From IMG/VR virus record IMGVR_UViG_3300046665_000548, positions 496,001-560,000 of that record: a stretch of DNA of 64,000 bases; one strand, given 5' to 3'. The position numbers and the translations under genes are program-made. Positions 1,063-36,085 of the stretch are shown here, piece after piece. How positions within the stretch are numbered: the first letter of the stretch is position 1; each line of letters begins with the position of its first letter. The notes beneath the pieces were generated by a model. The model was not told where the DNA came from. It worked only from the letters and a program-made list of their open reading frames with translations, and did not search any database.

Positions 1063-2400
1063 TTAAGCCGCCTTCTGAGCGAACGACTTCTTGTCCTTCG
1101 GATCGTAATAGCAGGTGATGCCGAACGGAGCCTTGAGGTTGTGGTTCGAACCATGAACGACGAACAACGTGTCGCAATAGTTCGGATCGCCCCAGGTGCC
1201 GCCTGGATAGCCGTCCGTGAACATCACGAAGCGCTGCGGCTCGATGCCCTCACGTTTCATGTGCTCCCAGTTGCACTCGAACATGGTGCCACCGCCGCCA
1301 GCCATACCGTATTCATCGATCTCGTGAATGTTCTCGGCGGTGAATTCTTTGTAGTTGTAAATCTCGGTATCGAAGACCCACAGACGTACCTTGAAGTCGC
1401 GGAACGTAGTCATGATGCCCTTGACCTCAGAGAGGAAATCCCTGAGCATTTCCTCCGACATCGAGCCCGAACAGTCGATGGCAGCCGCCACATCAACGGT
1501 GTCCATGAAATCCTGCGCCGGAAGCATTGGGACAACACCCGCTCCGAATGCATCGAACACGTCATCCACGGAGTTTGCGCCGCCGTCGAAACGGTCGGTC
1601 AGACCGTCAGCCGCTTCCTTGGCAATCGACCACGTACGACGCGAAATGCGCGAGAAGGTGTAGTCGTCCTTGATCGAGCTACGAATGTGAGCATCGAGCA
1701 GCGAACGCCAATCCATCTTCGGGGTCAGCAGTTCATCGATCATGCGGCGAACGCCAGCCGGTACCTTACCGGCACCAACCTGCTGGGCGCTCTGGATGAC
1801 CGCAGCCTTGATCTCCGAGCGGATACGCTGGATGTCGTCTTCCGACAGCTTCGGCGGGCCGTTCTTGCCAGTCACGGTCACATCGACGTACTGACCATCA
1901 CCGTCGCCATCGCCATCCTGATCATCGCCGTCAGCACCAAGCTCCAGGTGCTCGTCCAGCGGCATGCGGATGGTCACCGAATCCTTCTGGAGCAGCGCGT
2001 AAACCTCTTCCGAGGCCATTTCATCGGTGTAGCGCTTGTCATAGAGGCCCGACTTCGGCATCGTTCCGCACTTTTCTTCAACCAGCGTGTAGTTGATGAT
2101 GTAGTCGGAGGCCATGTTGTAAAGCTTCGGATCGCGTCCACCGCGACGGCCGAGCGTATCGTACACGCAATGAAGAACTTCGTGAGCGATCAGGAACAGA
2201 AGCTCGGCTTTGTCCAAGCTCTTAATGAATTCGCGATTGTAGAACAGATGCCGTCCGTCCGTAGCGGCGGTCTTGCACCAGTCGGTTGCGTCTACCGCGA
2301 TCAATCGCGCGGCGAGATTACCGAAGAATGGCTTCTCGAAAAGCAATTTGACGCGTGCGGCGACAATCTCACGGTAAACGGGGTCGTTAAGATCGCTCAT
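1063..2400 (-). CDS. Putative metallopeptidase (HExxH) plus VWA domain protein (DUF2201-like)
   Basis: TAATDGRHLFYN, AHEVLH zincin motif, acidic linker, C-terminal VWA with IDCSGSM (MIDAS), GGGGT and MFTDG. Confidence 0.85.
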   Translation of the reverse strand: MSDLNDPVYREIVAARVKLLFEKPFFGNLAARLIAVDATDWCKTAATDGRHLFYNREFIKSLDKAELLFLIAHEVLHCVYDTLGRRGGRDPKLYNMASDYIINYTLVEEKCGTMPKSGLYDKRYTDEMASEEVYALLQKDSVTIRMPLDEHLELGADGDDQDGDGDGDGQYVDVTVTGKNGPPKLSEDDIQRIRSEIKAAVIQSAQQVGAGKVPAGVRRMIDELLTPKMDWRSLLDAHIRSSIKDDYTFSRISRRTWSIAKEAADGLTDRFDGGANSVDDVFDAFGAGVVPMLPAQDFMDTVDVAAAIDCSGSMSEEMLRDFLSEVKGIMTTFRDFKVRLWVFDTEIYNYKEFTAENIHEIDEYGMAGGGGTMFECNWEHMKREGIEPQRFVMFTDGYPGGTWGDPNYCDTLFVVHGSNHNLKAPFGITCYYDPKDKKSFAQKAA

Positions 2401-2465
2401 TGAAAATCCTCTAATAATTGCCTCAGACCATGAACGAAAAAATCGATTTGGTCAAGCGATTTGGT

Positions 2466-2900
2466 TCAATATTCGTCGTCGTAGTGAGAGCCGCTTGCGG
2501 CTTCATCCCACTGTTTTCCAAGGGTTTCAAACGCATCTGGCTTCAATACCTCAGTCTTATGACGCTCCGAGAAAAGGTCGAAAGCATTCATAATGTTGGG
2601 ATCGAATGGTAGAAGGAAACCTTGAAGCAGAACTTTGTAGGCCGCTATACACTGGATGGTAGTGAAACTCTCCAGTATGTAAATGAGAGCGTTGTTCGCC
2701 TGCTCAATCCAGCGGTCGCGTTCCGGGCGATAAACCTCGTCGTTGCCTTCGTAGACGTTCTTGTTCCAGACATGACGCGCTTTAAGCTCGCGGCCGATAT
2801 CCCGCATCAACTCAAAGGCTTCTGTGTCGGAAAAGGATGACACCGAACGAGAACCGGAAAAAATGTCGTCTAATGGATGCATGTCGGCCCCTGAAAGCAA
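2466..2900 (-). CDS. Hypothetical protein
   Basis: 144 aa ORF between the VWA and AAA genes, same strand. Confidence 0.65.
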   Translation of the reverse strand: MLSGADMHPLDDIFSGSRSVSSFSDTEAFELMRDIGRELKARHVWNKNVYEGNDEVYRPERDRWIEQANNALIYILESFTTIQCIAAYKVLLQGFLLPFDPNIMNAFDLFSERHKTEVLKPDAFETLGKQWDEAASGSHYDDEY

Positions 2901-2929
2901 AGAGGCGGGCTTTCGCCCGCCTCAGAGGC

Positions 2930-4324
2930 TTAGTTCATGATCAGGCCGCGATACTTGTCCGCGAACACGTCGAAGTTCTTCATCTTCTGCGTGTCGAACG
3001 GCAGCTTGTGGACCTGGATGGCGGCCTTCGAGCCCATGATGCAGATTTCCGGCTGGAAATTCTCCATGATGAAGGCAAGGAAATGATCCGCTTCCTTGAG
3101 CCATTCGGCGCGATCTGCCGACTGCATCCACTTGGCACCATGCTCGCGCTTGATCTTCTCCACGCGTTCTTTCAACTCGTAGCAGAGCGTCGTGGTCAGA
3201 GCGTAGGCCAGAGAGACCTCGACCTTCTTCGGCATCTTCTTGAGCTTGCCGGAAAGAATGTGATCGGCCTGTGGCAGGTCCTTCGCGATCTTGCGGAACT
3301 CAGTGAACTGGACGCCGATACCGTCGCCAACCGCACCCGAGATCAGGGCGAGCATCACCATGTCCGGAAGGTCTTCGTTCTGGATCAGAATATCCGAAAC
3401 GAATTCCCACGAACGAGGCGTAGCGAAGCCACGTGCAGCCGTACCCGGTTCGAACTCGAACAGGTGGTTCTTGAACGCGGTCAGGTAGCCGACAACCTCG
3501 GAACTGACAGTGTTCAGGAGCGCCCAACGCTGCCAATCATCGAAATCGACGCGCATTTCAAGATGCACGAAACGATTCATGATCGGCGTCGGCATCTTGT
3601 AGGTGACGCCCTTATCGGTGTCGCGGTTGCCCATGCCCATGATGTAGACGAGGTTAGGAACCTCGTACTCACCGAGGCGACGATCCAGAACAAGCTGGTA
3701 CGCTGCGGCCTGCACGGACGGCGGAGCAGAGTTGAACTCTTCCAGAGCCAGGATAGCGCGGGTTTCGCCCTTCACGAGAATGCGGACCTTGCCAGCAACC
3801 GGAGCCGCCTTCGCGGCGTCGGCCTTGAACTCCGCCTCGTCATAGAGAGTGACGACGAACGAATCAAGAGTTTCGCTGTTCGCCTTCACGACCGCATGAA
3901 GCGGACGCTTCGGATCGGCGTTCACTGCGCGAACTTCGATCTTCGGGCTGGTGCAGTAATGCACGCCGTTGGAGCCGACCGGGTTGCCGAAATAGACCGG
4001 GGTATCTTCGGCATCGACCGCGACCACAAAGTTCAGATCGAGATCACGCGGCATGATATACGGGGTAGACCAGCGGACGCCTTCCACACCACCGACCTTG
4101 GTCGGGTAGGGAATGCCGCGAAGGTCGGTCGGGTCCATCTGCGAAAGACGCATATCGATGAACGCCATACGCTCTTCGGTCGCGACCTGCTGAGCAACCT
4201 GAGATTTGGAAATACCGGGCGGACCCCACATGAAGATCGCGCGATTGGTGGGCATCATTGCCCGGATAGCGACTGCGGCTTCGCTTGGCTTAACAGTGAG
4301 CGAATCGACCTTAGCTTTTGCCAT
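2930..4324 (-). CDS. MoxR-like/AAA_5 ATPase with internal insertion
   Basis: Walker A GPPGISKS, DMRLSQMDPTDLRGIP, Walker B LALEEFNS, QAAAYQLVLDRR, NRFVHL, TPRSW. Confidence 0.9.
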   Translation of the reverse strand: MAKAKVDSLTVKPSEAAVAIRAMMPTNRAIFMWGPPGISKSQVAQQVATEERMAFIDMRLSQMDPTDLRGIPYPTKVGGVEGVRWSTPYIMPRDLDLNFVVAVDAEDTPVYFGNPVGSNGVHYCTSPKIEVRAVNADPKRPLHAVVKANSETLDSFVVTLYDEAEFKADAAKAAPVAGKVRILVKGETRAILALEEFNSAPPSVQAAAYQLVLDRRLGEYEVPNLVYIMGMGNRDTDKGVTYKMPTPIMNRFVHLEMRVDFDDWQRWALLNTVSSEVVGYLTAFKNHLFEFEPGTAARGFATPRSWEFVSDILIQNEDLPDMVMLALISGAVGDGIGVQFTEFRKIAKDLPQADHILSGKLKKMPKKVEVSLAYALTTTLCYELKERVEKIKREHGAKWMQSADRAEWLKEADHFLAFIMENFQPEICIMGSKAAIQVHKLPFDTQKMKNFDVFADKYRGLIMN

Positions 4325-4834: not shown

Positions 4835-5127
4835 TGCCGATCTTCGATGATCTTTGTGCCCTGGGAAAGCATGAAGACCTCGAACTTCTCGCTCTTGAAC
4901 AGTTTGTTCAATTTGTCAGCGAGATTAAAGGCATGACCAGGATTCGAGAAGCTTACCTTCTTGTACTTTGGTCCTGGATAATCGAGCAAAACGTTTAGAG
5001 ATCGGAGATTGATCGGCGCACCTTCATAGAAGACTGCGTAGATCGCGTCTGCCTTCAGGACTTGTTCCGCTTTGTAGGATTTCGGGTCTGTGTAGTCTAG
5101 GATAACTGAAGGCTTAGGACGCGACAT
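4831..5127 (-). CDS. Hypothetical phage protein
   Basis: 98 aa ORF downstream of a TAAATA motif; YPGPKYKKVSFSNPGHAFNLA core. Confidence 0.8.
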   Translation of the reverse strand: MSRPKPSVILDYTDPKSYKAEQVLKADAIYAVFYEGAPINLRSLNVLLDYPGPKYKKVSFSNPGHAFNLADKLNKLFKSEKFEVFMLSQGTKIIEDRQ

Positions 5128-5192
5128 TTTTATTTCACTTCCCCTTTTCCAGAGGTTAAATTCTGGAGGTATTTATCTCAGGGGACGAGGAA

Positions 5193-5747
5193 CTAGATCG
5201 CGACGAATTTCTCAGACGAAAGCAGTTGTTTGAACTTGGCTGCATGTTGCGGAAGACGAACGCACCATTCTTCTATCTCTTGCGGAGAAGCGTAGAACGC
5301 CATCAAGATGTTTGAAATTCCAGTGATATCAGAGTAGGAACGCCACTCCTCTTCCTCCATCCCATAGTGGGAATAAGGCTCTAGCCAGAGTTGAGATGAC
5401 TTTAGCTGTAAGATCAGTCCTTTTTTCTCGTAATGGCTTCCTGAATAATTATCAGTGACCCATTTGATGTACTTGGCTGTCTTATTATCGGCCTTCAACC
5501 CGAACTTCATGATTTCACGACCATCTCGATCACAAGCAAAGCTCTTCGCAGTGTTGAGGTCAGTCGTGAGTGAAACGCCCGCGTCCTCTATGCCGCTTGC
5601 CTGTTTGGCCTTCAATATCCCAGAGCGAAGAATCGATAAGCCTGATACCAAGCTAGTTCCGTGATATAGAACCGCTGGAATATTGGACTCTTCTTCCTCA
5701 TACTCCTCGGGTTCGTCGGCTTCTCTGATCAAGTCACGTAGTTTCAT
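5193..5747 (-). CDS. Putative ADP-ribosyltransferase-fold protein
   Basis: VLYHGTS, GVSLTTD and EEEEW motifs in ART H-S-E order; N-terminus MKLRDLIRE. Confidence 0.6.
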   Translation of the reverse strand: MKLRDLIREADEPEEYEEEESNIPAVLYHGTSLVSGLSILRSGILKAKQASGIEDAGVSLTTDLNTAKSFACDRDGREIMKFGLKADNKTAKYIKWVTDNYSGSHYEKKGLILQLKSSQLWLEPYSHYGMEEEEWRSYSDITGISNILMAFYASPQEIEEWCVRLPQHAAKFKQLLSSEKFVAI

Positions 5748-5764
5748 AGTGGATATTTATTCGG

Positions 5765-5962
5765 CTAATATCCCAATTTGTCCAGGAGAGCATTCATCTC
5801 CTCTTCCGCTCTACGGTGTTTTCGTTCGGAAGCTTGATCGTACAACTCATTCGCTCCTGCACCATGATAGTCGCAGGAGATTCCACACGCTGGGCAATGC
5901 TCAGTCGAAATCGTCTCGACATATTTGTCGGAAGAACAATTCCAGCATTTCTCGCGCTTCAT
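5765..5962 (-). CDS. Small zinc-ribbon protein
   Basis: MKREKCWNC...CPACG; ATGA overlap with the clpS stop. Confidence 0.55.
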   Translation of the reverse strand: MKREKCWNCSSDKYVETISTEHCPACGISCDYHGAGANELYDQASERKHRRAEEEMNALLDKLGY

Positions 5963-6255
5963 GCTTCTTCGGCCGTGCACAACAGTGGATGATTGAACTG
6001 CTCAGCGATATTTCGGACTTGAGTTGACTTGGTGATGGCGATCTCTTTGGTGTAAAGACCAACCGTCGCCTTGCCCGCACTGTGAACAGTCAGCATGATC
6101 TGCGTTGATTCTTCAACACTCTTGTGAAAAACCTGCATCAACACCTTGGTGACAAAATCCATAGGTGTGAAATCATCGTTGTGAAGGATGATCTTCCACA
6201 TGGAAGGCGTCTTAATAGTCATCCGAGTTGCAGTATCAGTTGCCGTATTTGACAT
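5959..6255 (-). CDS. clpS: Clp protease adaptor ClpS
   Basis: PSMWKIILHNDDFTPMDFVTKVL...IMLTVHSAGKATVGLY; canonical ClpS core. Confidence 0.93.
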   Translation of the reverse strand: MSNTATDTATRMTIKTPSMWKIILHNDDFTPMDFVTKVLMQVFHKSVEESTQIMLTVHSAGKATVGLYTKEIAITKSTQVRNIAEQFNHPLLCTAEEA

Positions 6256-6320
6256 GAACGAAAATCCAATCCGAAATTACGAAAACGAATTTTAGTAGTT
6301 CGTTTCGTTAAAAGCAACTT

Positions 6321-6920
6321 TCAATCTTTTTCAGGCAACGTGTTCGGAGGAGGGATGAAGTCTATATCCGCGTCACTATCATCATCCGTGTCAGATTGCC
6401 CGGTCGCGCCGTTGCCCAGTTTTGCGTCTCTACCCGGTTTGCTGCGCTTTCCCTTCTTGCCTTTACCTTTGCCTTCTTGTCCAGCCTCGGCCTCGTCTCC
6501 ATCCTCGTCATCATCGCCCGTCCCGCCTTTCATATAGACGGTCTTACCTTCGCCAACTTTTTTCTTGGCCTGTTCGACCTTCTTATGGGCTTCGCGCGAA
6601 TAGGGTATCTGGATCGAACGCGGCTCTTTGGTGCCCGGCTCGATGATCCACAGGTAAATTGCCCCAGGATCGCCTTTACCCGAAATTGGTTCACGCGCAG
6701 CACCAAAGATGAATTGAAACTCTGCGGGCGCTTTAGGCAGCTTGACCGACCATCCAAGGGCGGCGCGGAATGTCACAAACGACACACAGGCGCACACCAA
6801 GCTCATGATAATGAATCCTGACTTGGCTGCCCAATGAAGACGGCTGTAGATGACCCCGATGAGCAAAATCACCATCAAGAACATCGTGATCAGGGTAATT
6901 GTACCAGAGGTGAAATCCAT
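6321..6920 (-). CDS. Membrane protein with soluble C-terminal domain
   Basis: Two N-terminal TM segments, IYLWI...EPRSIQIPYS, low-complexity acidic/basic tail. Confidence 0.75.
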   Translation of the reverse strand: MDFTSGTITLITMFLMVILLIGVIYSRLHWAAKSGFIIMSLVCACVSFVTFRAALGWSVKLPKAPAEFQFIFGAAREPISGKGDPGAIYLWIIEPGTKEPRSIQIPYSREAHKKVEQAKKKVGEGKTVYMKGGTGDDDEDGDEAEAGQEGKGKGKKGKRSKPGRDAKLGNGATGQSDTDDDSDADIDFIPPPNTLPEKD

Positions 6921-7603
6921 TATCTGGGGTCCATTGTAGTGGGTTCACGTAGTTTGACCGGCAGTTCTTTAGTAAGATTTACGACTTCGCCTTCTGGTGT
7001 CACGGTAAACCTTATCAAATGAACCTCTTCGCGGTTATTCGAAATTGTGCTTGATCCCTCAAACACTTTCTTCACCCTGGGATTCAGTTTGTCTATTCGA
7101 AGCTTCACATCGAATGGAGGAACCGGATGATAGCCAGTATCACCACCGGACGAGTCGCGATTCCCGTTTCCAGAAGCTTGGCCTGAGCGAACCGCGTAGA
7201 GATGAGCATTGACTACGTATTCGCCTGGGCGAATACCTCGAATGGCAACTATCTCCTGGTTATTAGGGACAACGACCTTCTTGCCATCGACAACGACCGT
7301 GTTGTTTTTCCAACCAAGGTCATCGCGTTCCAGATTTAGGAAGCCAACTTCCTTGTTGGAATAATACAGCATCTTTCCATCTGGGTCTCTCATCCAAATG
7401 TCCACGTCGTAATTGAGTTCAGTTGCCCATTCCATGGTGATCATAAATTCCATCTTTGGCTTCACGCCGTCGTCTTTTTTCTGTTCTGGAGAAATCATCA
7501 GAAACAGCGCAAAGCATGTCACAAGAACAGCTTTTGCGAACGTCAGCGCAAAGTTTGTAATGGCATCGGCCGTGTCGTCTACTTTGCGTCTGCGCGATCT
7601 CAT
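6920..7603 (-). CDS. Single-pass membrane protein with beta-rich extracytoplasmic domain (ExbD-position partner)
   Basis: N-terminal TM, MEW...DVDIWMRDP and LERDDLG motifs; translationally coupled to a MotA/ExbB-like gene. Confidence 0.7.
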   Translation of the reverse strand: MRSRRRKVDDTADAITNFALTFAKAVLVTCFALFLMISPEQKKDDGVKPKMEFMITMEWATELNYDVDIWMRDPDGKMLYYSNKEVGFLNLERDDLGWKNNTVVVDGKKVVVPNNQEIVAIRGIRPGEYVVNAHLYAVRSGQASGNGNRDSSGGDTGYHPVPPFDVKLRIDKLNPRVKKVFEGSSTISNNREEVHLIRFTVTPEGEVVNLTKELPVKLREPTTMDPR

Positions 7604-8349
7604 GAGCGGTTCTCAAGATACGGAATGATATGTGTTTCGCTGATGACCGTGGCCACGTCGAGAGTTTCTTCGACGCCCTCGTTGAGTAAGCGACCATTGA
7701 CGTTCAAAGCAATTTTGAACAAGAAGCTTGCCGTGCAAGGGATGAAGGCAACCGCGATACCAGCGAAGAATGCTCCTAGATTATTCCTCATAGCATCCAA
7801 GTTCACGCCAGCCTGCATGAAAGGCCAGAACGCCATCACGACGCCGCCTACAGTGGCAAGGATGCCGATCCAAATGATCTGCGATGCGAAGAATTCACCA
7901 ATGCTCGCGTTGCGTTCCAGCTTCGAAGCGAGAACATCCATCAGAATGCGTTGATCGATGCGATGCTTGGGATCGTTCTTCGCACGGTCGCACAAAGCAG
8001 AGACGTGGTTGGCGAACGGAGATGCAGCTATTCTAAAATGACTACCATTCTGGCTCACAAGAACCACCGCGTCATCGGTACTCATAACATCTGATAGAGC
8101 ATTCTCTCGAAGCCATTTCAGTGCTTCGGTAAGACTACGATGTTGTTTAGATACAGAGAGCACCTGCACGCCTGCGAATATTTCTCCGAAGACGTACACC
8201 ACTAGGAGCACAAGGCTCAGGTGAGAATGATCGTGCCTGATCATAATCTGAGGCAGACCAAGAAAAGTCATCCCGATGATCGCAAAGATCACCACAGTGA
8301 TGTACAGGAGCCAAGATAGGAATAATTTATGTGTGATTAGCATTTGCAT
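7600..8349 (-). CDS. MotA/TolQ/ExbB-like membrane protein
   Basis: Two N-terminal TMs plus GILATVGGVV and GIAVAFIPCT helices; start moved to 8349 because of the GAGGGAG SD and upstream TAAATA. Confidence 0.6.
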   Translation of the reverse strand: MQMLITHKLFLSWLLYITVVIFAIIGMTFLGLPQIMIRHDHSHLSLVLLVVYVFGEIFAGVQVLSVSKQHRSLTEALKWLRENALSDVMSTDDAVVLVSQNGSHFRIAASPFANHVSALCDRAKNDPKHRIDQRILMDVLASKLERNASIGEFFASQIIWIGILATVGGVVMAFWPFMQAGVNLDAMRNNLGAFFAGIAVAFIPCTASFLFKIALNVNGRLLNEGVEETLDVATVISETHIIPYLENRS

Positions 8350-27924: not shown

Positions 27925-28000
27925 GGGGATGTAGCTCAATGGTTAGAGCGTCCGCCTGTCGAGCGGAAGGTTGCGGGTTCGAGTCCCGTCATTCCCGCCA
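27925..28000 (+). tRNA. tRNA-Asp(GTC)
   Basis: Acceptor GGGGATG/CATTCCC, anticodon arm TCCGC-CTGTCGA-GCGGA, TTCGAGT loop, encoded CCA. Confidence 0.95.
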
Positions 28001-28001
28001 C

Positions 28002-28076
28002 GCTTCCATCGTCTAGTGGTTAGGACGTTGCCCTCTCAAGGCAAAAACGCGGGTTCGAATCCCGCTGGAAGCACCA
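28002..28076 (+). tRNA. tRNA-Glu(CTC)
   Basis: GCTTCCA/TGGAAGC, TTGCC-CTCTCAA-GGCAA, TTCGAAT loop, CCA. Confidence 0.95.
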
Positions 28077-28090
28077 CAAATTTTGGTTAC

Positions 28091-28168
28091 GGGACGCTCC
28101 TCTAAACGGAATAGGAGCCCTCTTTTTCACAGAGGAGAATGTCGGTTCGAGTCCGACGCGTCCTGCCA
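28091..28168 (+). tRNA. tRNA-Glu(TTC)
   Basis: GGGACGC/GCGTCCT, CCTCT-TTTTCAC-AGAGG, TTCGAGT loop, CCA. Confidence 0.9.
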
Positions 28169-28169
28169 C

Positions 28170-28245
28170 GCATCCATCGGCTAAAGGTAAGGCCGCTCGC
28201 CTTTCAAGCGAGAAATCTAGGGTTCGAGTCCCAGTGGATGCACCA
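28170..28245 (+). tRNA. tRNA-Glu(TTC), imperfect T-stem
   Basis: GCATCCA/TGGATGC, CTCGC-CTTTCAA-GCGAG, CCA; unpaired A28219 in the T-stem. Confidence 0.9.
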
Positions 28246-31469: not shown

Positions 31470-31682
31470 ATGCTCTTATTGGCGGCTGTCACATACATCA
31501 AGCTGTTCTCGGCGGCCCATGCGCTGGTTTACACGTATGGGCCGTACAAATACTCTCTAAAAGAGTGCGAGGCCCAGGTCGAGCTATTGGTGCGCATGAT
31601 CATGTTGCCACCAGTCGATCCGGAATTTACTGGCGCGACCTTCCAATGTTTCAAAAATAAGACTGCACGGAAATCCAAGTGA
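31470..31682 (+). CDS. Small exported protein
   Basis: Signal-like N-terminus MLLLAAVTYIKLFSAAHA; two Cys. Confidence 0.55.
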   Translation: MLLLAAVTYIKLFSAAHALVYTYGPYKYSLKECEAQVELLVRMIMLPPVDPEFTGATFQCFKNKTARKSK

Positions 31683-32350
31683 ACGAGCTTATCGAGACCA
31701 AAGAACTTGTTTACTCAATCAGACATCCCGTCTCAGGACTGTTCTGGAATGGAAGCACCCACGAGCCCAAATTCTTTCCAAAACCTCACCGATGGGCCAA
31801 GCTATCTGATGTGAAGCGCCGCTATGCGGATTACCTTGTCGCGTTGGAAACCAAGGACGAGGGAACGCGATATAGGCGTCCAGGCGCTTGGGATGACTGC
31901 CCTCCGTATCTGATTCTGGTGACCGAGCAGATCACGTCTACACCGCTGTCGTCAGAATCTTTGTCGCCAATCGACGGGGATAATCTTGTCTTGGCGAAAG
32001 CGAAATCAATCTTATGCGATAACCGCGCCGACTATGACAATTACCATCATCTTGTTCGGACTAGTGGTGCTTCGGCCTACCAGTTCATGGTTCAGCCGAA
32101 ATGGGATTTTCTGCAAACTCTCATCCAAAAGCAAAAAGTCTCTCGGTCCGCGAAGAGAGCATCAACCGAACAAGACGGCGAAACGCTGGTCGATCTAGTT
32201 AAAAAGCTTGGGCATCAGCGCGCCCGAGTAGTCGGCTGGTCGATATTTGTAAAAGATCAAAAAGACTTGCTGATGCTCAAAATGCAGGGGCACGTCGATA
32301 TTGATTACGTCTATGATCTGTTTTCGATGGAAAAAGTTGGTTCCGGTTAG
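31679..32350 (+). CDS. Hypothetical protein with FKL-like C-terminal module
   Basis: 223 aa; ends SIFVKDQKDLLMLKMQG... Confidence 0.75.
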   Translation: MNELIETKELVYSIRHPVSGLFWNGSTHEPKFFPKPHRWAKLSDVKRRYADYLVALETKDEGTRYRRPGAWDDCPPYLILVTEQITSTPLSSESLSPIDGDNLVLAKAKSILCDNRADYDNYHHLVRTSGASAYQFMVQPKWDFLQTLIQKQKVSRSAKRASTEQDGETLVDLVKKLGHQRARVVGWSIFVKDQKDLLMLKMQGHVDIDYVYDLFSMEKVGSG

Positions 32351-32946
32351 GACCGGAACACCTTGACTGGATTACCGCGCTCGATCTGATCGTGCGCTTT
32401 CCAGGCTTCCTCCAGAATAGTGCCGCGATCCATCTCGTTCTTGATCTCCAGAAGCTCTCCTAGACGCTGTACGGCGACCTTTTTGTTCTGGTGCTGAGAT
32501 CGCCCATCGCGCACCACGACGCGCATGCCGCTCGGCACATGCGTGGCTCTCACCGCGCTATCCGTAACGTTCTGGTGCTGCCCGCCAGGGCCACCAGCGC
32601 GAAATGCTTCGAAGCGGATGTCCTCAGGCTTGATCGTCTGCGTTGCAGGTGCGTTTGGAAGCTCGGTGATGGAAACGAACCAATTCTTCCGCTTATGTCC
32701 CGGACGTATGGTGCTTTGTGCGATCCACTGGACCGAACCAAGCCATCCTTGAGCGAAGCTACTGGAGCTTTCGCCTTCAAGCATGACCACGACGGAACCC
32801 GGCCCGTGCTTGTCCGGTGCCTTGCCCTCAACTACGGAGGTCGTCAGGTCATTCTCGCTGGCATCCTTACAGAGCCTCTTTACGATCTCTGCCACGGCAA
32901 GACGGCATTCGGCCGGGCCACGCCCGCTTGTGATGATCAGGTTCAT
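32347..32946 (-). CDS. prfH: Peptide chain release factor homolog H
   Basis: ITSGRGPAECRLAV, GSVQWIAQSTIRPGHKRKNWF, GGPGGQHQNVTDSAVRATH. Confidence 0.93.
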   Translation of the reverse strand: MNLIITSGRGPAECRLAVAEIVKRLCKDASENDLTTSVVEGKAPDKHGPGSVVVMLEGESSSSFAQGWLGSVQWIAQSTIRPGHKRKNWFVSITELPNAPATQTIKPEDIRFEAFRAGGPGGQHQNVTDSAVRATHVPSGMRVVVRDGRSQHQNKKVAVQRLGELLEIKNEMDRGTILEEAWKAHDQIERGNPVKVFRS

Positions 32947-33173
32947 GACGGTTGACTCACCTCAACCTTATCTCCGTCGAGCGTCACGTATTCATCGTTG
33001 TCCCACAGCACGGGCATCATCCCCACGTGTCCGTGCAGAATAGCTTCAAACGACAACAGTAGGCTTACCGAATTAGGCGAAGCAATTACAACGGCTGCCT
33101 CAAGGGTTCTCCCTTCGGCCAAAATCGTTACGGTATCGCCCGTGTGGATATTCGGAGGTAATTTATTCACCAA
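32943..33173 (-). CDS. Hypothetical protein
   Basis: 76 aa, coupled within the rtcB-prfH operon. Confidence 0.65.
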   Translation of the reverse strand: MVNKLPPNIHTGDTVTILAEGRTLEAAVVIASPNSVSLLLSFEAILHGHVGMMPVLWDNDEYVTLDGDKVEVSQPS

Positions 33174-33975
33174 AGCATTCCTTATAGGCCGCAGCCGCCA
33201 CGGCTTCTACGATCTTCGTGGTGTCACACGCGTAGAGCCCTGATGACGAGAACGCGTTAAGCTCAACCACCTTGGCACCCAGTTCGGTCATCGCCACATC
33301 ACAGACATACACCGTATCGGCTTGCCATTCCATGTCAGCAACTTTTTGCGCCATGACATCGCATTCCGGTAAGGTATCGCGGCGAACATCCAGAACGTTA
33401 TCCCAACGATATTCCGATCCGGTCACTACCTTTTTGTCCGCGATGACATATCGGAACTCGGATTGAATTTTACGGGGCGTCGCAACTACACAGAGCGTAT
33501 CAGGATCGATGACGTGCCCTTGGGTGATTTTAAACATGTCATCACCCTTACTGGGATCAATGACCTGCCCGACGAACTCTTTCAGCCCTGATAGAGGTTT
33601 AGCGAAGATCATCTCATTGAGGGATGACAGATCAATGTACGGGATGATCCGGTAGTCCGAGTTCACTAGATTGTCTCGTCCGATGTGAGCGGCAAACTTG
33701 TGAAACAACTTCACCTTATCATTGAAGTACAATCCTGGCATCCACGATCTGCCGAATTGCCGTTCGACCTGCTTACAGAACTGGATCGTACCGTGCGTGA
33801 CCACAAAAGACTTGTCACCGAATTTGGTTTGGATCGGTTCTCCACGACCCGCGTAGTAAACCACATCGACCTCATGGCCTTGTTGTATCGCAGCATCGGC
33901 CAGCGATGGAAAGCCGGTTTTGTACTGGTTTTCAGTCAGTCGCTCATCAATTAGCCAATGGAGGGTATCAACCAT
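33163..33975 (-). CDS. ATP-grasp-like domain protein
   Basis: FAKPLSGLKEF.G, IQSEFRYVI, VYVCDVA, VVELNAFSSSGLY; start at the internal Met 33975. Confidence 0.75.
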   Translation of the reverse strand: MVDTLHWLIDERLTENQYKTGFPSLADAAIQQGHEVDVVYYAGRGEPIQTKFGDKSFVVTHGTIQFCKQVERQFGRSWMPGLYFNDKVKLFHKFAAHIGRDNLVNSDYRIIPYIDLSSLNEMIFAKPLSGLKEFVGQVIDPSKGDDMFKITQGHVIDPDTLCVVATPRKIQSEFRYVIADKKVVTGSEYRWDNVLDVRRDTLPECDVMAQKVADMEWQADTVYVCDVAMTELGAKVVELNAFSSSGLYACDTTKIVEAVAAAAYKECFGE

Positions 33976-34198
33976 TCTGAAATACTCTTGCGTTTTCTCG
34001 AACAAGGCTGACGGCCTTATCGATATAGTCGTTCCAGCGAACAGCACTTAGGTCAAGTACCGTAGTGAATTCGCTCTCTAACTCCCACCTGCGACACGTA
34101 ATTCGTCCGAGACCGCTCATCTTGGTGATCCACCAATATTGGCCACCCGCGAAAAGCATGCAGTGATCGTTTTGCTGTTCCATTATTTGAGTATCCAA
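33968..34198 (-). CDS. Hypothetical protein
   Basis: ORF filling the gap in the operon; start uncertain. Confidence 0.5.
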   Translation of the reverse strand: MDTQIMEQQNDHCMLFAGGQYWWITKMSGLGRITCRRWELESEFTTVLDLSAVRWNDYIDKAVSLVRENARVFQNG

Positions 34199-34255
34199 AG
34201 AACAAGCGCGAGGACAAGAACAACCGGAACCGCATATAGAAAGATGAAAGCAGGA

Positions 34256-34429
34256 TTACCTTGGTGCATTGCGAACATCCTCAATTGTCATCACGTCGAT
34301 CCATTGAAAATTCCAACGCAGAAAAGCTTTCTCATCATCGGTCATGTTCCGAATGTTCATCCATTCCTCGGCCGCATCTTTATCTTCGACCAGCACGATG
34401 GGAGACACGCCCAGACTGAGGACACGCAT
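34256..34429 (-). CDS. Hypothetical protein
   Basis: TAATG-coupled to the rtcB stop. Confidence 0.55.
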   Translation of the reverse strand: MRVLSLGVSPIVLVEDKDAAEEWMNIRNMTDDEKAFLRWNFQWIDVMTIEDVRNAPR

Positions 34430-35574
34430 TACTTGTCCTTCCAACTTTTGTTCTTCTCGGCCGCTGCTGACTGCGCCGTCTTGAACGTCACTAGCGGTCG
34501 GAAGGTAGCGACGACCTTGACCAGACCGAACGCCACTAGATCATTGATCACGCGGTCGATATTCTTGTACGCGTCGCCTGCCTCTTCCATCAACAGATTA
34601 CGATCCTCGCAAACAACAATGCCTCCGAAAGGATTTTTGGCCATCTTTTCGCGAACCGATTTGACGTTCTGCACGCGGCCATGCATGGACCCGCGATCAT
34701 ATTTGCGCCCAGCACCGTGAGCCAATGACGTAAGCGAATCAGCGGTAGCCGTATCAAGTGGCTGCACGAGATAAGACAGTGTTTCCCGAGACCCAGGAAT
34801 CGGCACAAGTCCGCGATCAGAAGGAGCCGCGCCTTTGCGATGTAGCACGCGCTCATCTTCGGTAAGTTCGAGGAAGTTATGACTGAGATCGGCAATTGGT
34901 GTGATCACGCCACGGGCCGCTTCCGCTGCTCGCTCAGCGATGATCTGGCGGTTTAGTTCTGCCCAATCCACCGCGTGTTTGTGGTCAGTCAGGTAGCGCC
35001 CACCATCTTCGGAATCTACCTGAAGGGTCGTTACGTTTTTTGCAAGGAGGCTTTCCAAAACAGAATAGCCAAGAGCCCGCGACCCGGAGTGGACCAACAC
35101 GAACACCATGTCGGCGTCGAGGTTCGCTTTTGAGGCTGCTTCTTTGTCAAAAATCTCATGGATGGCTTGCAGTTCGCAAAAATGGTTTCCGCCGCCGATG
35201 GTCCCAAGGCCCCCATCGTACGGAGATGGACGAAACCCCCATTGTTCAGTTCGGTGACGGTGATCGCCACTCCAAGGTTCGTCCAGGTCCTTTAGACGTT
35301 CCGCAACCTTATCTGCTCGAAGCTTTCGGTGCTTCAGGTCGGTCATGAAGAGACCCATCCCGCAGCCAATATCGGAACCGACGATGCGTGGATGAATTTG
35401 CGTGCTCAGCATCCCACAACCCACCGGGCCATATTTTCCCGGATGCAAATCAGGCATGGCGGCCACCGCCTGAACCGTCTCGGTATCGGCAAGCTGCTCA
35501 AGCTGGCGCTCGGCGGCCCCTTCGATCCAGGCGCGGTCAGAGAAAAATCGGTTAATTGGTGCTCGTTGATTCAT
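34429..35574 (-). CDS. rtcB: RtcB-family RNA ligase, PrfH-coupled (RtcB2) type
   Basis: AMPDLHPGKYGPVG, GSDIGCG, GTIGGGNHFCE, VHSGSR, HRKGA, LAHGAGRK, EEAGDAYK. Confidence 0.93.
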   Translation of the reverse strand: MNQRAPINRFFSDRAWIEGAAERQLEQLADTETVQAVAAMPDLHPGKYGPVGCGMLSTQIHPRIVGSDIGCGMGLFMTDLKHRKLRADKVAERLKDLDEPWSGDHRHRTEQWGFRPSPYDGGLGTIGGGNHFCELQAIHEIFDKEAASKANLDADMVFVLVHSGSRALGYSVLESLLAKNVTTLQVDSEDGGRYLTDHKHAVDWAELNRQIIAERAAEAARGVITPIADLSHNFLELTEDERVLHRKGAAPSDRGLVPIPGSRETLSYLVQPLDTATADSLTSLAHGAGRKYDRGSMHGRVQNVKSVREKMAKNPFGGIVVCEDRNLLMEEAGDAYKNIDRVINDLVAFGLVKVVATFRPLVTFKTAQSAAAEKNKSWKDK

Positions 35575-35638
35575 CCAAAAGCAGTATAGACGAAAACGTA
35601 ATCCGTCAATCGTGAGCTATAGGATCGTCTTCTATAGC

Positions 35639-36085
35639 TCACGACCATCTAAACTTGAAGTGAAGCCGATCATTTTCATCGGTAAAACGGGCGATCAATA
35701 CCCGATAGCCGAGAACCGCGCCTATTTGGCACCTCACACGTCCCTCAATTTCGTTTGCCCATTCGATGGCCTCGCAAGCCACTTCAGGGCTCCATCGATC
35801 CTGATCAATTATTTCGATCATTTGCGCATCAGTAACGATTTCAAGCGGGGCATTCTGGCACTTGTAGCACATATCAACATTGGTCGCGCAATTCTTACAG
35901 AACCACAAAACCCTAACGGCCCTCACCTCTTTATCAGTCTCGCGGAATTTAAGTTTCATTTTTCCCAAATAGGTTTTCGCGTTCGATTTGTACACGAAAT
36001 TACCCCTAAAAACAAATCTCCAAAAACGCTTGACGATAGGCGAAATCATGTTAGAAATACACGATGGTCTATGAAGGCATAACAA
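35639..36085 (-). CDS. Hypothetical protein, FKL family
   Basis: Ends ARFTDENDRLHFKFRWS; contains CKNC...CYKC. Confidence 0.6.
   Translation of the reverse strand: MLCLHRPSCISNMISPIVKRFWRFVFRGNFVYKSNAKTYLGKMKLKFRETDKEVRAVRVLWFCKNCATNVDMCYKCQNAPLEIVTDAQMIEIIDQDRWSPEVACEAIEWANEIEGRVRCQIGAVLGYRVLIARFTDENDRLHFKFRWS
36029..36057 (+). promoter_or_regulatory. Early-type promoter (leaderless)
   Basis: CTTGAC-N17-TAGAAA, 6 nt, then ATG 36064. Confidence 0.6.

Follow-up and report, generated by a model that had tools for sequence, protein, structure and literature searches.

We describe a 64,000-nt stretch of DNA (hereafter the window), bases 496,001-560,000 of the IMG/VR virus record IMGVR_UViG_3300046665_000548, which carries on its minus strand a gene for RtcB2, an RtcB-family RNA ligase, and a gene for PrfH, a peptide chain release factor. 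In our reading the two genes form a phage-borne module for the rescue and repair of ribosomes, likely a counter-defence against toxins that cleave 16S rRNA, and the genes lying between them are passengers; we place the probability of this reading at about two in three. So far no system other than RtcB2-PrfH is known to repair a ribosome whose decoding centre has been cut, and RtcB2-PrfH has been presented solely as a bacterial defence against colicins and toxins of contact-dependent inhibition (CDI). The core system is already known; its carrier, its proposed role, its promoter type and its split architecture are new.

The gene set was established from an open reading frame (ORF) listing together with direct reading of the minus strand. 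In the direction of transcription the locus comprises the features given below, where identities refer to L003, a 14-kb Logan contig that represents its closest relative, and codon-usage log-odds come from a model trained on the long ORFs of the genome.

35639..35959, minus strand: orfZ106, 106 amino acids (aa), first gene of the co-oriented block; 64% identity to L003 3037-3393.
35614..35640, minus strand: perfect 9-bp hairpin, GAGCTATAG / CTATAGCTC, with a 9-nt loop, from sequence reading.
35583..35609, minus strand: sigma-70-like promoter, -35 TTGACG and -10 TATACT, kept in L003.
34429..35574, minus strand: rtcB2, 381 aa, RtcB-family 3'-phosphate/5'-OH RNA ligase of the PrfH-associated subfamily (NF007153, TIGR03073, PF01139).
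34256..34429, minus strand: orfA57, 57 aa, an ORFan; codon log-odds +0.26.
33968..34183, minus strand: orfB71, 71 aa; 56% identity to L003 4780-5001, codon log-odds +0.17.
33163..33975, minus strand: R2K ATP-grasp, 270 aa from the ATG at 33975 (PF14243, PF18299, phrog_7313).
32943..33170, minus strand: orfC75, 75 aa; 71% identity to L003 5809-6036, codon log-odds +0.14.
32347..32946, minus strand: prfH, 199 aa, peptide chain release factor H of the short class (TIGR03072, PF00472).
32340..32359, minus strand: terminator-like hairpin, 8-bp stem with 5 G-C pairs, then CAACTTTTTC, from sequence reading.

From rtcB2 to prfH the block reads as one tightly packed, translationally coupled transcription unit of the minus strand. 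Four of its five junctions overlap: orfA57 starts on the rtcB2 stop (TAATG), orfB71 stops on the ATP-grasp start (ATGgtTGA), and orfC75 overlaps both the ATP-grasp stop and the prfH start (GTGAATAA and TCATGA), the sole gap being the 72 nt from orfA57 to orfB71. No terminator was found between rtcB2 and prfH, which are on the same strand and not adjacent, about 1.5 kb and four genes apart, and the hairpin that follows prfH, with its run of T residues, overlaps the stops of prfH and of a convergent gene. Codon usage favours all four intervening genes (log-odds +0.14 to +0.26). Both rtcB2 and prfH are full-length, score above their family cut-offs and occur as intact single copies in the 607,744-bp genome; in 608 kb, two single-copy genes would lie as close together as 3.2 kb with a probability of about 1%. 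These results bear out what the sequence-only reading of the locus had proposed, namely two intact genes in one operon separated by four genes (orfA57, orfB71, R2K and orfC75) that include an ATP-grasp, with one amendment: orfZ106 lies upstream of rtcB2 on the same strand.

Two further ORFs were considered and rejected. The 60-aa ORF at 34235-34053, a candidate operon gene, has a codon log-odds of -0.19, and its L003 "homologue" is merely an overlapping frame of orfB; the plus-strand ORF at 35612-36082, a candidate divergent gene, is a shadow of orfZ106, as decided on homology to L003. The convergent neighbour of prfH is a 223-aa gene at 31679-32350 on the plus strand, and the stop codons of the two genes overlap by 4 nt. 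Its product is 51% identical to that of the gene following prfH on the prfH strand in L003, so it is inverted in place in the window, and no convincing inverted repeats flank it.

The predicted ligase exceeds the equivalog cut-offs of two NCBIfam families, NF007153 (432.3 against 407 bits) and TIGR03073, "release_rtcB" (348.5 against 271.8 bits), matches PF01139 as well, and is 86% identical to the L003 RtcB. Its motifs GSDIGCG, GGGNHF, VHSGSR, SHNF and AHGAGR align to their counterparts in Pyrococcus horikoshii RtcB, and by this comparison the Asp, Cys and His metal ligands and the GMP-accepting histidine of HGAGR are retained. Judged by its sequence, the phage RtcB2 is thus a full-length PrfH-associated RtcB with its catalytic residues in place, and ligation activity is predicted.

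The release factor scores 217.6 bits with TIGR03072 (cut-off 166.65), against 88.6 bits with prfB and 82.5 bits with prfA, both far under their own cut-offs, and also matches PF00472. It lacks RF domain 1, its 199 residues aligning to residues 122-311 of RF2 only, and carries the GGQ peptidyl-hydrolase motif as GGPGGQHQN. The protein is about 40% identical to E. coli PrfH (EcPrfH) and matches the EcPrfH chain 7sa4_8 with E = 4.6e-41, the two solved PrfH chains matching at about 1e-41. Contacts of EcPrfH on the damaged ribosome were taken from PMC9304027 and mapped through the alignment to 7sa4_8. The pocket for the 3'-phosphate of A1493 is retained, with identical equivalents of EcPrfH R83, H86, R88 and R189; K89 and N90 of the h18/S12 patch are likewise identical, and H184 is kept too. 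The PrfH-CT subfamily, with 225-250 aa, bears an extra basic C-terminal helix and performs dual rescue (10.1101/2025.01.09.632186). This basic tail is absent from the phage protein, whose alignment to the 231-aa CgPrfH stops at residue 201 of the latter. The phage PrfH is therefore assigned to the full-length short class with its substrate-recognition residues in place, and peptide release activity is predicted. The names that the sequence-only reading had given to both proteins are accordingly upheld, on curated family cut-offs together with the conserved active-site, GGQ and A1493-3'-phosphate residues.

Considering that the published activity of the family (PMC9304027, PMC9223846) is matched here by conserved residues for recognition of the cleaved end, a counter-defence role against rRNA-cleaving toxins is plausible. 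The steps of such a mechanism are those obtained in studies of the E. coli proteins (PMC9304027, PMC9223846, PMC13166195). During infection, a toxin of the colicin E3 or CdiA-CT(ECL) type would cut 16S rRNA between A1493 and G1494. PrfH would then bind the damaged decoding centre of the stalled 70S ribosome and free the nascent peptide, and once the 30S subunit is free, RtcB2 would join its 5'-OH end to the 2',3'-cyclic-phosphate (or 3'-phosphate) end. In this way translation capacity for phage proteins would be regained, the attacker being either a host abortive-infection toxin or a toxin delivered by a competitor.

The sequence-only reading had called the module phage-encoded, and this is verified by its provenance: the window belongs to a single IMG/VR virus record of 607,744 bp that CheckV rates as complete (100%), with genes for a large terminase and for a major capsid protein of the T4 Gp23 type (311 bits). 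The record also encodes topoisomerase II subunits, ribonucleotide reductase and tail-fibre-like proteins. ARAGORN reports 57 tRNAs and a permuted tmRNA (tag ANDNVAVSEYALAA), and an Rnl1 ligase homologue and a CCA-adding enzyme are encoded as well, which shows that the phage invests heavily in translation and RNA repair. A megablast search of the locus against GenBank phages gave no match. The permuted form of tmRNA is typical of alphaproteobacteria. Among cellular PrfH proteins, those of Methylobacteriaceae (56% identity) and Bradyrhizobium (51-55%) are nearest, and R2K relatives occur in Mesorhizobium and Pararhizobium genomes; on these three grounds the host is probably an alphaproteobacterium, likely of the Hyphomicrobiales. 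A maximum-likelihood tree of PrfH groups the window tightly with L003, followed by L064, L024 and the Hyphomicrobiales group, the branching order among these three not being settled by the tree.

The promoter of rtcB2 was found where the sequence-only reading had placed a near-leaderless one. Its -35 hexamer TTGACG (35609-35604) and -10 hexamer TATACT (35588-35583) are separated by a 15-nt spacer, a length that explains why the promoter goes unreported in a standard scan, and the rtcB2 ATG follows 8 nt past the -10. The two hexamers are conserved in L003, as are their 15-nt separation and their closeness to the ATG; the sequence of the spacer, by contrast, has diverged. Genome-wide, exact sites of the form TTGAC-N15/16-TAnAnT-N6-10-ATG number 9 against about 1.7 expected, and 8 of the 9 open ORFs of 56-549 aa. 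The class takes the form TTGACr-N15/16-(TGg)TAGATT, with (TGg)TAGATT as the -10 at most sites. The ATGs found in the exact-site scan are:

In the window: 8499, 53126 and 35574 (rtcB2).
In G000:C1: 3910, 46137, 148436, 150915, 177909 and 606203.

Given the conservation of the promoter in L003 and its membership in this genome-wide class, the rtcB2 mRNA is probably leaderless or nearly so, like those of a class of genes in this phage. A leaderless rtcB2 message would be independent of the anti-Shine-Dalgarno sequence, which sits on the 3' fragment released by the cleavage, although any relevance of this is speculation. The 9-bp hairpin upstream of the promoter starts inside the orfZ106 stop codon and is followed by no T-run; it is absent from L003, which shows a clean 28-nt gap exactly at that point. 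It may be an operator, an RNA-processing site or a weak terminator. We rejected a repeated PeSL-like mobile element, given that the hairpin is unrepeated in the genome and absent at the other eight promoters of the class.

To assess the genes inserted in the pair, R2K loci were gathered from viral contigs, metagenomes, reference genomes and assemblies. A single-sequence R2K scan of viral contigs gave no match; alignment-based scans yielded the loci, which amount to 42 when redundancy is removed (40 plus L066 and the P0005 contig), four of them under 2 kb and uninformative. RtcB and PrfH lie within 5-6 kb of R2K at only one of the 42, L003, whose R2K is 80% identical, and neither gene was found near R2K relatives of 57-60% identity, which are closer than average. 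The order in L003 is RtcB, an unrelated 74-aa gene, the orfB homologue, R2K, the orfC homologue, an extra 149-aa gene and PrfH, and the orfZ106 homologue sits directly upstream of RtcB. The first gene of the L003 operon (2264-3040) encodes a 258-aa P-loop kinase-like protein that matches APS_kinase/AAA_33, and weakly CTP_transf_like, and that may be an RNA-end kinase; the 149-aa gene before prfH (6029-6478) encodes a hydrophobic protein; neither is present in the window. The association of the ATP-grasp with rtcB2-prfH is real but local.

The pair itself was surveyed among viral contigs, and 11 distinct RtcB-PrfH pairs were found, this phage included. In seven, RtcB is directly upstream of PrfH and abuts it, as in Methylobacterium; the other four are split by variable cargo. 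The PrfH of L064, a 50-kb phage contig, is the next nearest (59% identity); there, five small genes lie within the pair, none of them related to orfA, orfB or orfC. In L030 two unrelated genes of 179 and 162 aa (4993-6017) lie inside the pair, and an AAA ATPase (6661-7857) follows it. In the L025/L028/L031 clade RtcB is directly preceded by a conserved gene of about 277 aa, and L032 is a PrfH contig in which RtcB was not detectable. As judged from these arrangements, the best reading is that the rtcB-prfH junction in phages gathers passenger genes, and that orfZ106 and the four intervening genes are most likely independent passengers at a permissive junction, co-expressed with the repair genes and not needed for repair.

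The inserted ATP-grasp exceeds the gathering thresholds of R2K_3 (PF14243, 55.6 against 26.3 bits) and R2K_2 (PF18299, 53.7 against 26.2 bits) and matches phrog_7313 at 174 bits. Over 200 homologues of 260-290 aa were found, and in an alignment of 32 of them K132, E173-F-R175, D226, E238 and N240 are invariant, in keeping with the Lys, E-x-R and Mg-binding D/E-x-N residues of an ATP-grasp fold. The motif of its last strand, E238-L-N240, is ExN and not the ExGD of R2K.3, the R2K.3 group being marked by ExGD instead of ExN at this position (PMC4431377), which places the protein nearer to R2K.2/DUF4343 than to R2K.3. Homologues in cultured jumbo phages such as Atu_ph07, XacN1 and RsoM2USA are 25-31% identical, and the XacN1 one is annotated as DUF4343. 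The AlphaFold2 (AF2) model has a pLDDT of 90, with LysX/ArgX and RimK as the best folds in the PDB (Foldseek E = 6e-10), and R2K is accordingly predicted to be a protein or peptide carboxylate-amine ligase. A literature search found no characterised member of R2K.2 or R2K.3. We consider that R2K, an enzyme widespread among jumbo phages, probably ligates an amino acid to the carboxylate of a protein, which may belong to the translation apparatus, in parallel to the repair and not as a subunit of the repair system. A second, divergent R2K paralogue is encoded in the same genome (G000:C1:15137-15958, plus strand) and is about 31% identical to the L003 R2K.

As for the small genes around it, orfA57 has no homologue in any fetched locus, the corresponding place in L003 being taken by the unrelated 74-aa gene, and orfB71 gave no Pfam or PHROG match. 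Homologues of orfC75 (P0242-P0244) were found on contigs without R2K, RtcB or PrfH. Prediction of a complex of R2K with orfC75 returned a score of 0.07, "no answer", which is evidence neither way, and ESM Atlas look-ups of orfC75 and orfZ106 returned only unnamed clusters at or below 0.91.

No conserved partner gene was found beside R2K across the loci. In one huge-phage clade (L012-L019, L022, L051 and L053; about 3.3-9 kb) the order is ClpP, Rnl1, two small genes, R2K, two small genes and CysRS; a second R2K clade (L004/L007/L041/L042) has a CCA-adding enzyme upstream of R2K, and on the P0005 contig an Rnl2-type ligase is found 4.7 kb from R2K. At several loci the gene abutting R2K belongs to the FKxRW family, which is described below.

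Four observations weigh against a repair module with mere passengers. A toxin of the presumed host that acts on the 16S decoding centre was not identified; a search of the phage genome with PF09000 (colicin E3 domain) gave no match, but the control gave none either. Three EcPrfH contacts are changed in the phage PrfH (H85 to G, R52 to G and R181 to W), the H85 and R52 positions varying in CgPrfH too. The orfB-R2K-orfC block, with its overlapping starts and stops, is kept in two phages at 56-80% identity, and a functional unit would look alike. Finally, R2K is found repeatedly beside RNA-repair and translation genes, a pattern that hints at a functional tie to RNA repair but lacks significance, such genes being abundant in these phages.

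The sequence-only reading had considered the inserted genes to be possible extra components of the system. In its fullest form this would make R2K, perhaps with orfB71 and orfC75, a working accessory that modifies a ribosomal protein, PrfH or RtcB2, so that ribosomes become refractory to the toxin or the repair factors are tuned, as RimK modifies S6. The inserted genes are predicted to share a transcript with the repair genes and to be coupled to them in translation, and the orfB-R2K-orfC block recurs in L003; the best folds, LysX/ArgX and RimK, belong to enzymes that attach amino acids at the C-termini of small proteins, the RimK substrate being a ribosomal protein. R2K also stands beside Rnl1 and CysRS, a CCA-adding enzyme and an Rnl2-type ligase in three contexts, and accretion of accessory genes around bacterial RFH-RtcB is documented (PMC6514570). 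Nonetheless the linkage is confined to two phages whose R2K proteins are 80% identical, the 41 other R2K loci counted being without RtcB or PrfH, and no insert is present in the seven abutting phage pairs or in the Methylobacterium operon. The orfC75 homologues stand alone elsewhere, R2K has no constant partner gene, and other phages insert unrelated cargo. The sequence-only reading had named lack of conservation of the ATP-grasp linkage as grounds for refutation, and beyond one close relative the linkage is indeed not conserved; the proposal of extra components is thus unsupported, and we consider working accessories unlikely, although of all the alternatives this one fares best.

A broader version, in which R2K of huge phages is a modifier of the translation apparatus coupled to RNA repair, and at this locus acts with RtcB2-PrfH in a sequence of release, ligation and modification, seems to us somewhat less probable still. 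If it were true, R2K would place an amino-acid tail on a ribosomal protein or factor, and ribosomes would resist decoding-centre ribotoxins or recover faster from them.

Of the same low standing is the possibility that the phage recently captured a host operon, which would serve against colicin or CDI toxins delivered by competitors during a long infection, or would be a near-neutral passenger, and would have no anti-abortive-infection role. In agreement with a capture, the nearest cellular PrfH proteins are those of Hyphomicrobiales (51-56%), the tree shows no clean split between phage and cellular sequences, and the characterised toxins countered by RtcB2-PrfH are all inter-bacterial weapons (PMC9304027, PMC9223846). 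The pair is nevertheless intact in at least 11 distinct viral contigs, this one included, and the module here has gained a leaderless promoter of the phage type that two phages conserve; the recurrence of the pair and the conserved promoter argue for selection within phage. Roles against competitor toxins and against host defence are not mutually exclusive.

The weakest alternative, which we regard as improbable, holds that RtcB2 chiefly mends RNAs of other kinds, for example tRNAs that anticodon nucleases have cleaved, while PrfH clears any stalled ribosome: the role usually given to phage RtcB ligases is tRNA repair (PMC7824862), an Rnl1 ligase, a CCA-adding enzyme and 57 tRNAs are encoded in the genome, and intact non-stop ribosomes are rescued by some PrfH proteins as well (10.1101/2025.01.09.632186), but the substrates of EcRtcB2 and those of EcRtcB1 exclude one another, with RtcB2 acting on the decoding-centre cut (PMC9304027), the phage RtcB scores as a PrfH-associated equivalog, and the phage PrfH belongs to the short class without the non-stop-rescue tail and keeps the A1493-3'-phosphate pocket.

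A ribosome-repair module with passenger genes being the preferred reading, the locus can be compared with known systems. Bacterial RtcB2 genes lie overwhelmingly in two-gene operons (PMC9304027). The rtcB2-prfH operon of E. coli ATCC 25922 (PMC9304027, PMC9223846, PMC13166195) has the same families in the same order and a short PrfH of about 200 aa, and shares with the phage locus the GGQ motif, the A1493-3'-phosphate pocket and the RtcB active-site residues. It differs in its carrier, which is here a 608-kb T4-like phage, in its overlapping genes, which here stand 1.5 kb and four genes apart, and in the phage-type leaderless promoter and the upstream Zn-ribbon/FKxRW gene found here.

Phage T4 repairs PrrC-cleaved tRNA-Lys with Pnkp and Rnl1 (cited in PMC9304027 and PMC7824862). 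The module described here is likewise a phage-encoded RNA repair of damage to the translation apparatus, in a T4-related phage with its own Rnl1 homologue, but it employs an RtcB-type ligase and a release factor, and its presumed substrate is 16S rRNA within the ribosome, not tRNA.

As in the bacterial RFH-RtcB systems (PMC6514570), a two-gene core has gathered extra genes, one of which (orfZ106) has a Zn-ribbon-like motif. The accessories given in the main text of that study include a TPR protein, a Pol-beta nucleotidyltransferase (NTase) and ZnR proteins with positively charged C-terminal helices (PMC6514570). No TPR or Pol-beta NTase match was found among the proteins of the locus, and in orfZ106 the CxxC...CxxC pattern is present but the C-terminus is an FKxRW domain with no basic tail. 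An R2K ATP-grasp is not among the accessories in the main text of PMC6514570. With the described R2K clade (Cdc123, R2K.2/DUF4343 and R2K.3; PMC4431377) the phage protein shares the conserved lysines, the ExN motif, the ATP-grasp fold and the presence in jumbo phages; unlike that clade, this copy is enclosed by a ribosome-repair operon, a setting in which the family has not been reported.

A full-text literature search found no paper describing PrfH or the RtcB2-PrfH pair in a phage. A survey of huge phages lists RF1, RF2, RRF, tmRNA and SmpB, and an overview of jumbo phages treats RtcB, Pth2 and R2K separately. Convincing PrfH matches in GenBank phage records are rare and mostly short fragments. 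Intact, promoter-equipped phage copies suggest that phages meet 16S-cleaving toxins during infection, and from them we would predict undiscovered rRNA-cleaving abortive-infection systems, in this case probably in Hyphomicrobiales. Annotation of the ATP-grasp as part of the repair system is unwarranted from this one locus. The leaderless promoter class and the FKxRW family, with about 50 members per genome, may be useful by-products for the annotation of huge phages.

The first gene of the co-oriented block, orfZ106, consists of a Zn-ribbon-like N-terminus (CxxC...CxxC) and a C-terminal FKxRW-family domain (family hidden Markov model (HMM), E = 3.4e-10). Neither orfZ106 nor the FKxRW family gave a Pfam or PHROG match. 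Its AF2 model (pLDDT 69) shows a beta-alpha-beta-beta-alpha C-terminal domain, and fold searches with this model of pLDDT 69 returned only generic beta-alpha-beta-beta-alpha matches (Z at most 5.8, BFVD E at least 0.04). FKxRW proteins are about 65-100 aa long, with an invariant Trp in the central helix and a C-terminus of the form ...F.D..DA..F(K/R)(L/M)RW plus one residue. The HMM detects 51 members in this genome (orfZ106 and 50 ORFs across G000:C1), and in a library of 1.8 billion proteins the family accounts for about 1,008 clusters at 50% identity. In L064 (2583-10447) at least 17 copies lie within 8 kb, around the rtcB-prfH pair and splitting it, and members are also found in L009 (1776-12526). 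The FKxRW C-terminus was considered as an R2K substrate and rejected, the motif being modelled as a packed terminal helix with no free tail; the adjacency of R2K and FKxRW genes was likewise set aside as evidence, as it is not clearly above the expectation from 51 copies per genome.

Among the tRNA genes of the record, two adjacent ones have CUA anticodons and are amber-suppressor-like; the tRNA/tmRNA sites lie outside the window at G000:C1:4091-4256 and 576377-576796. TAG is the rarest stop codon of the long ORFs of the genome (146/781). Within the window, a cluster of Asp-Glu-Glu-Glu tRNAs is located at 27925-28245.

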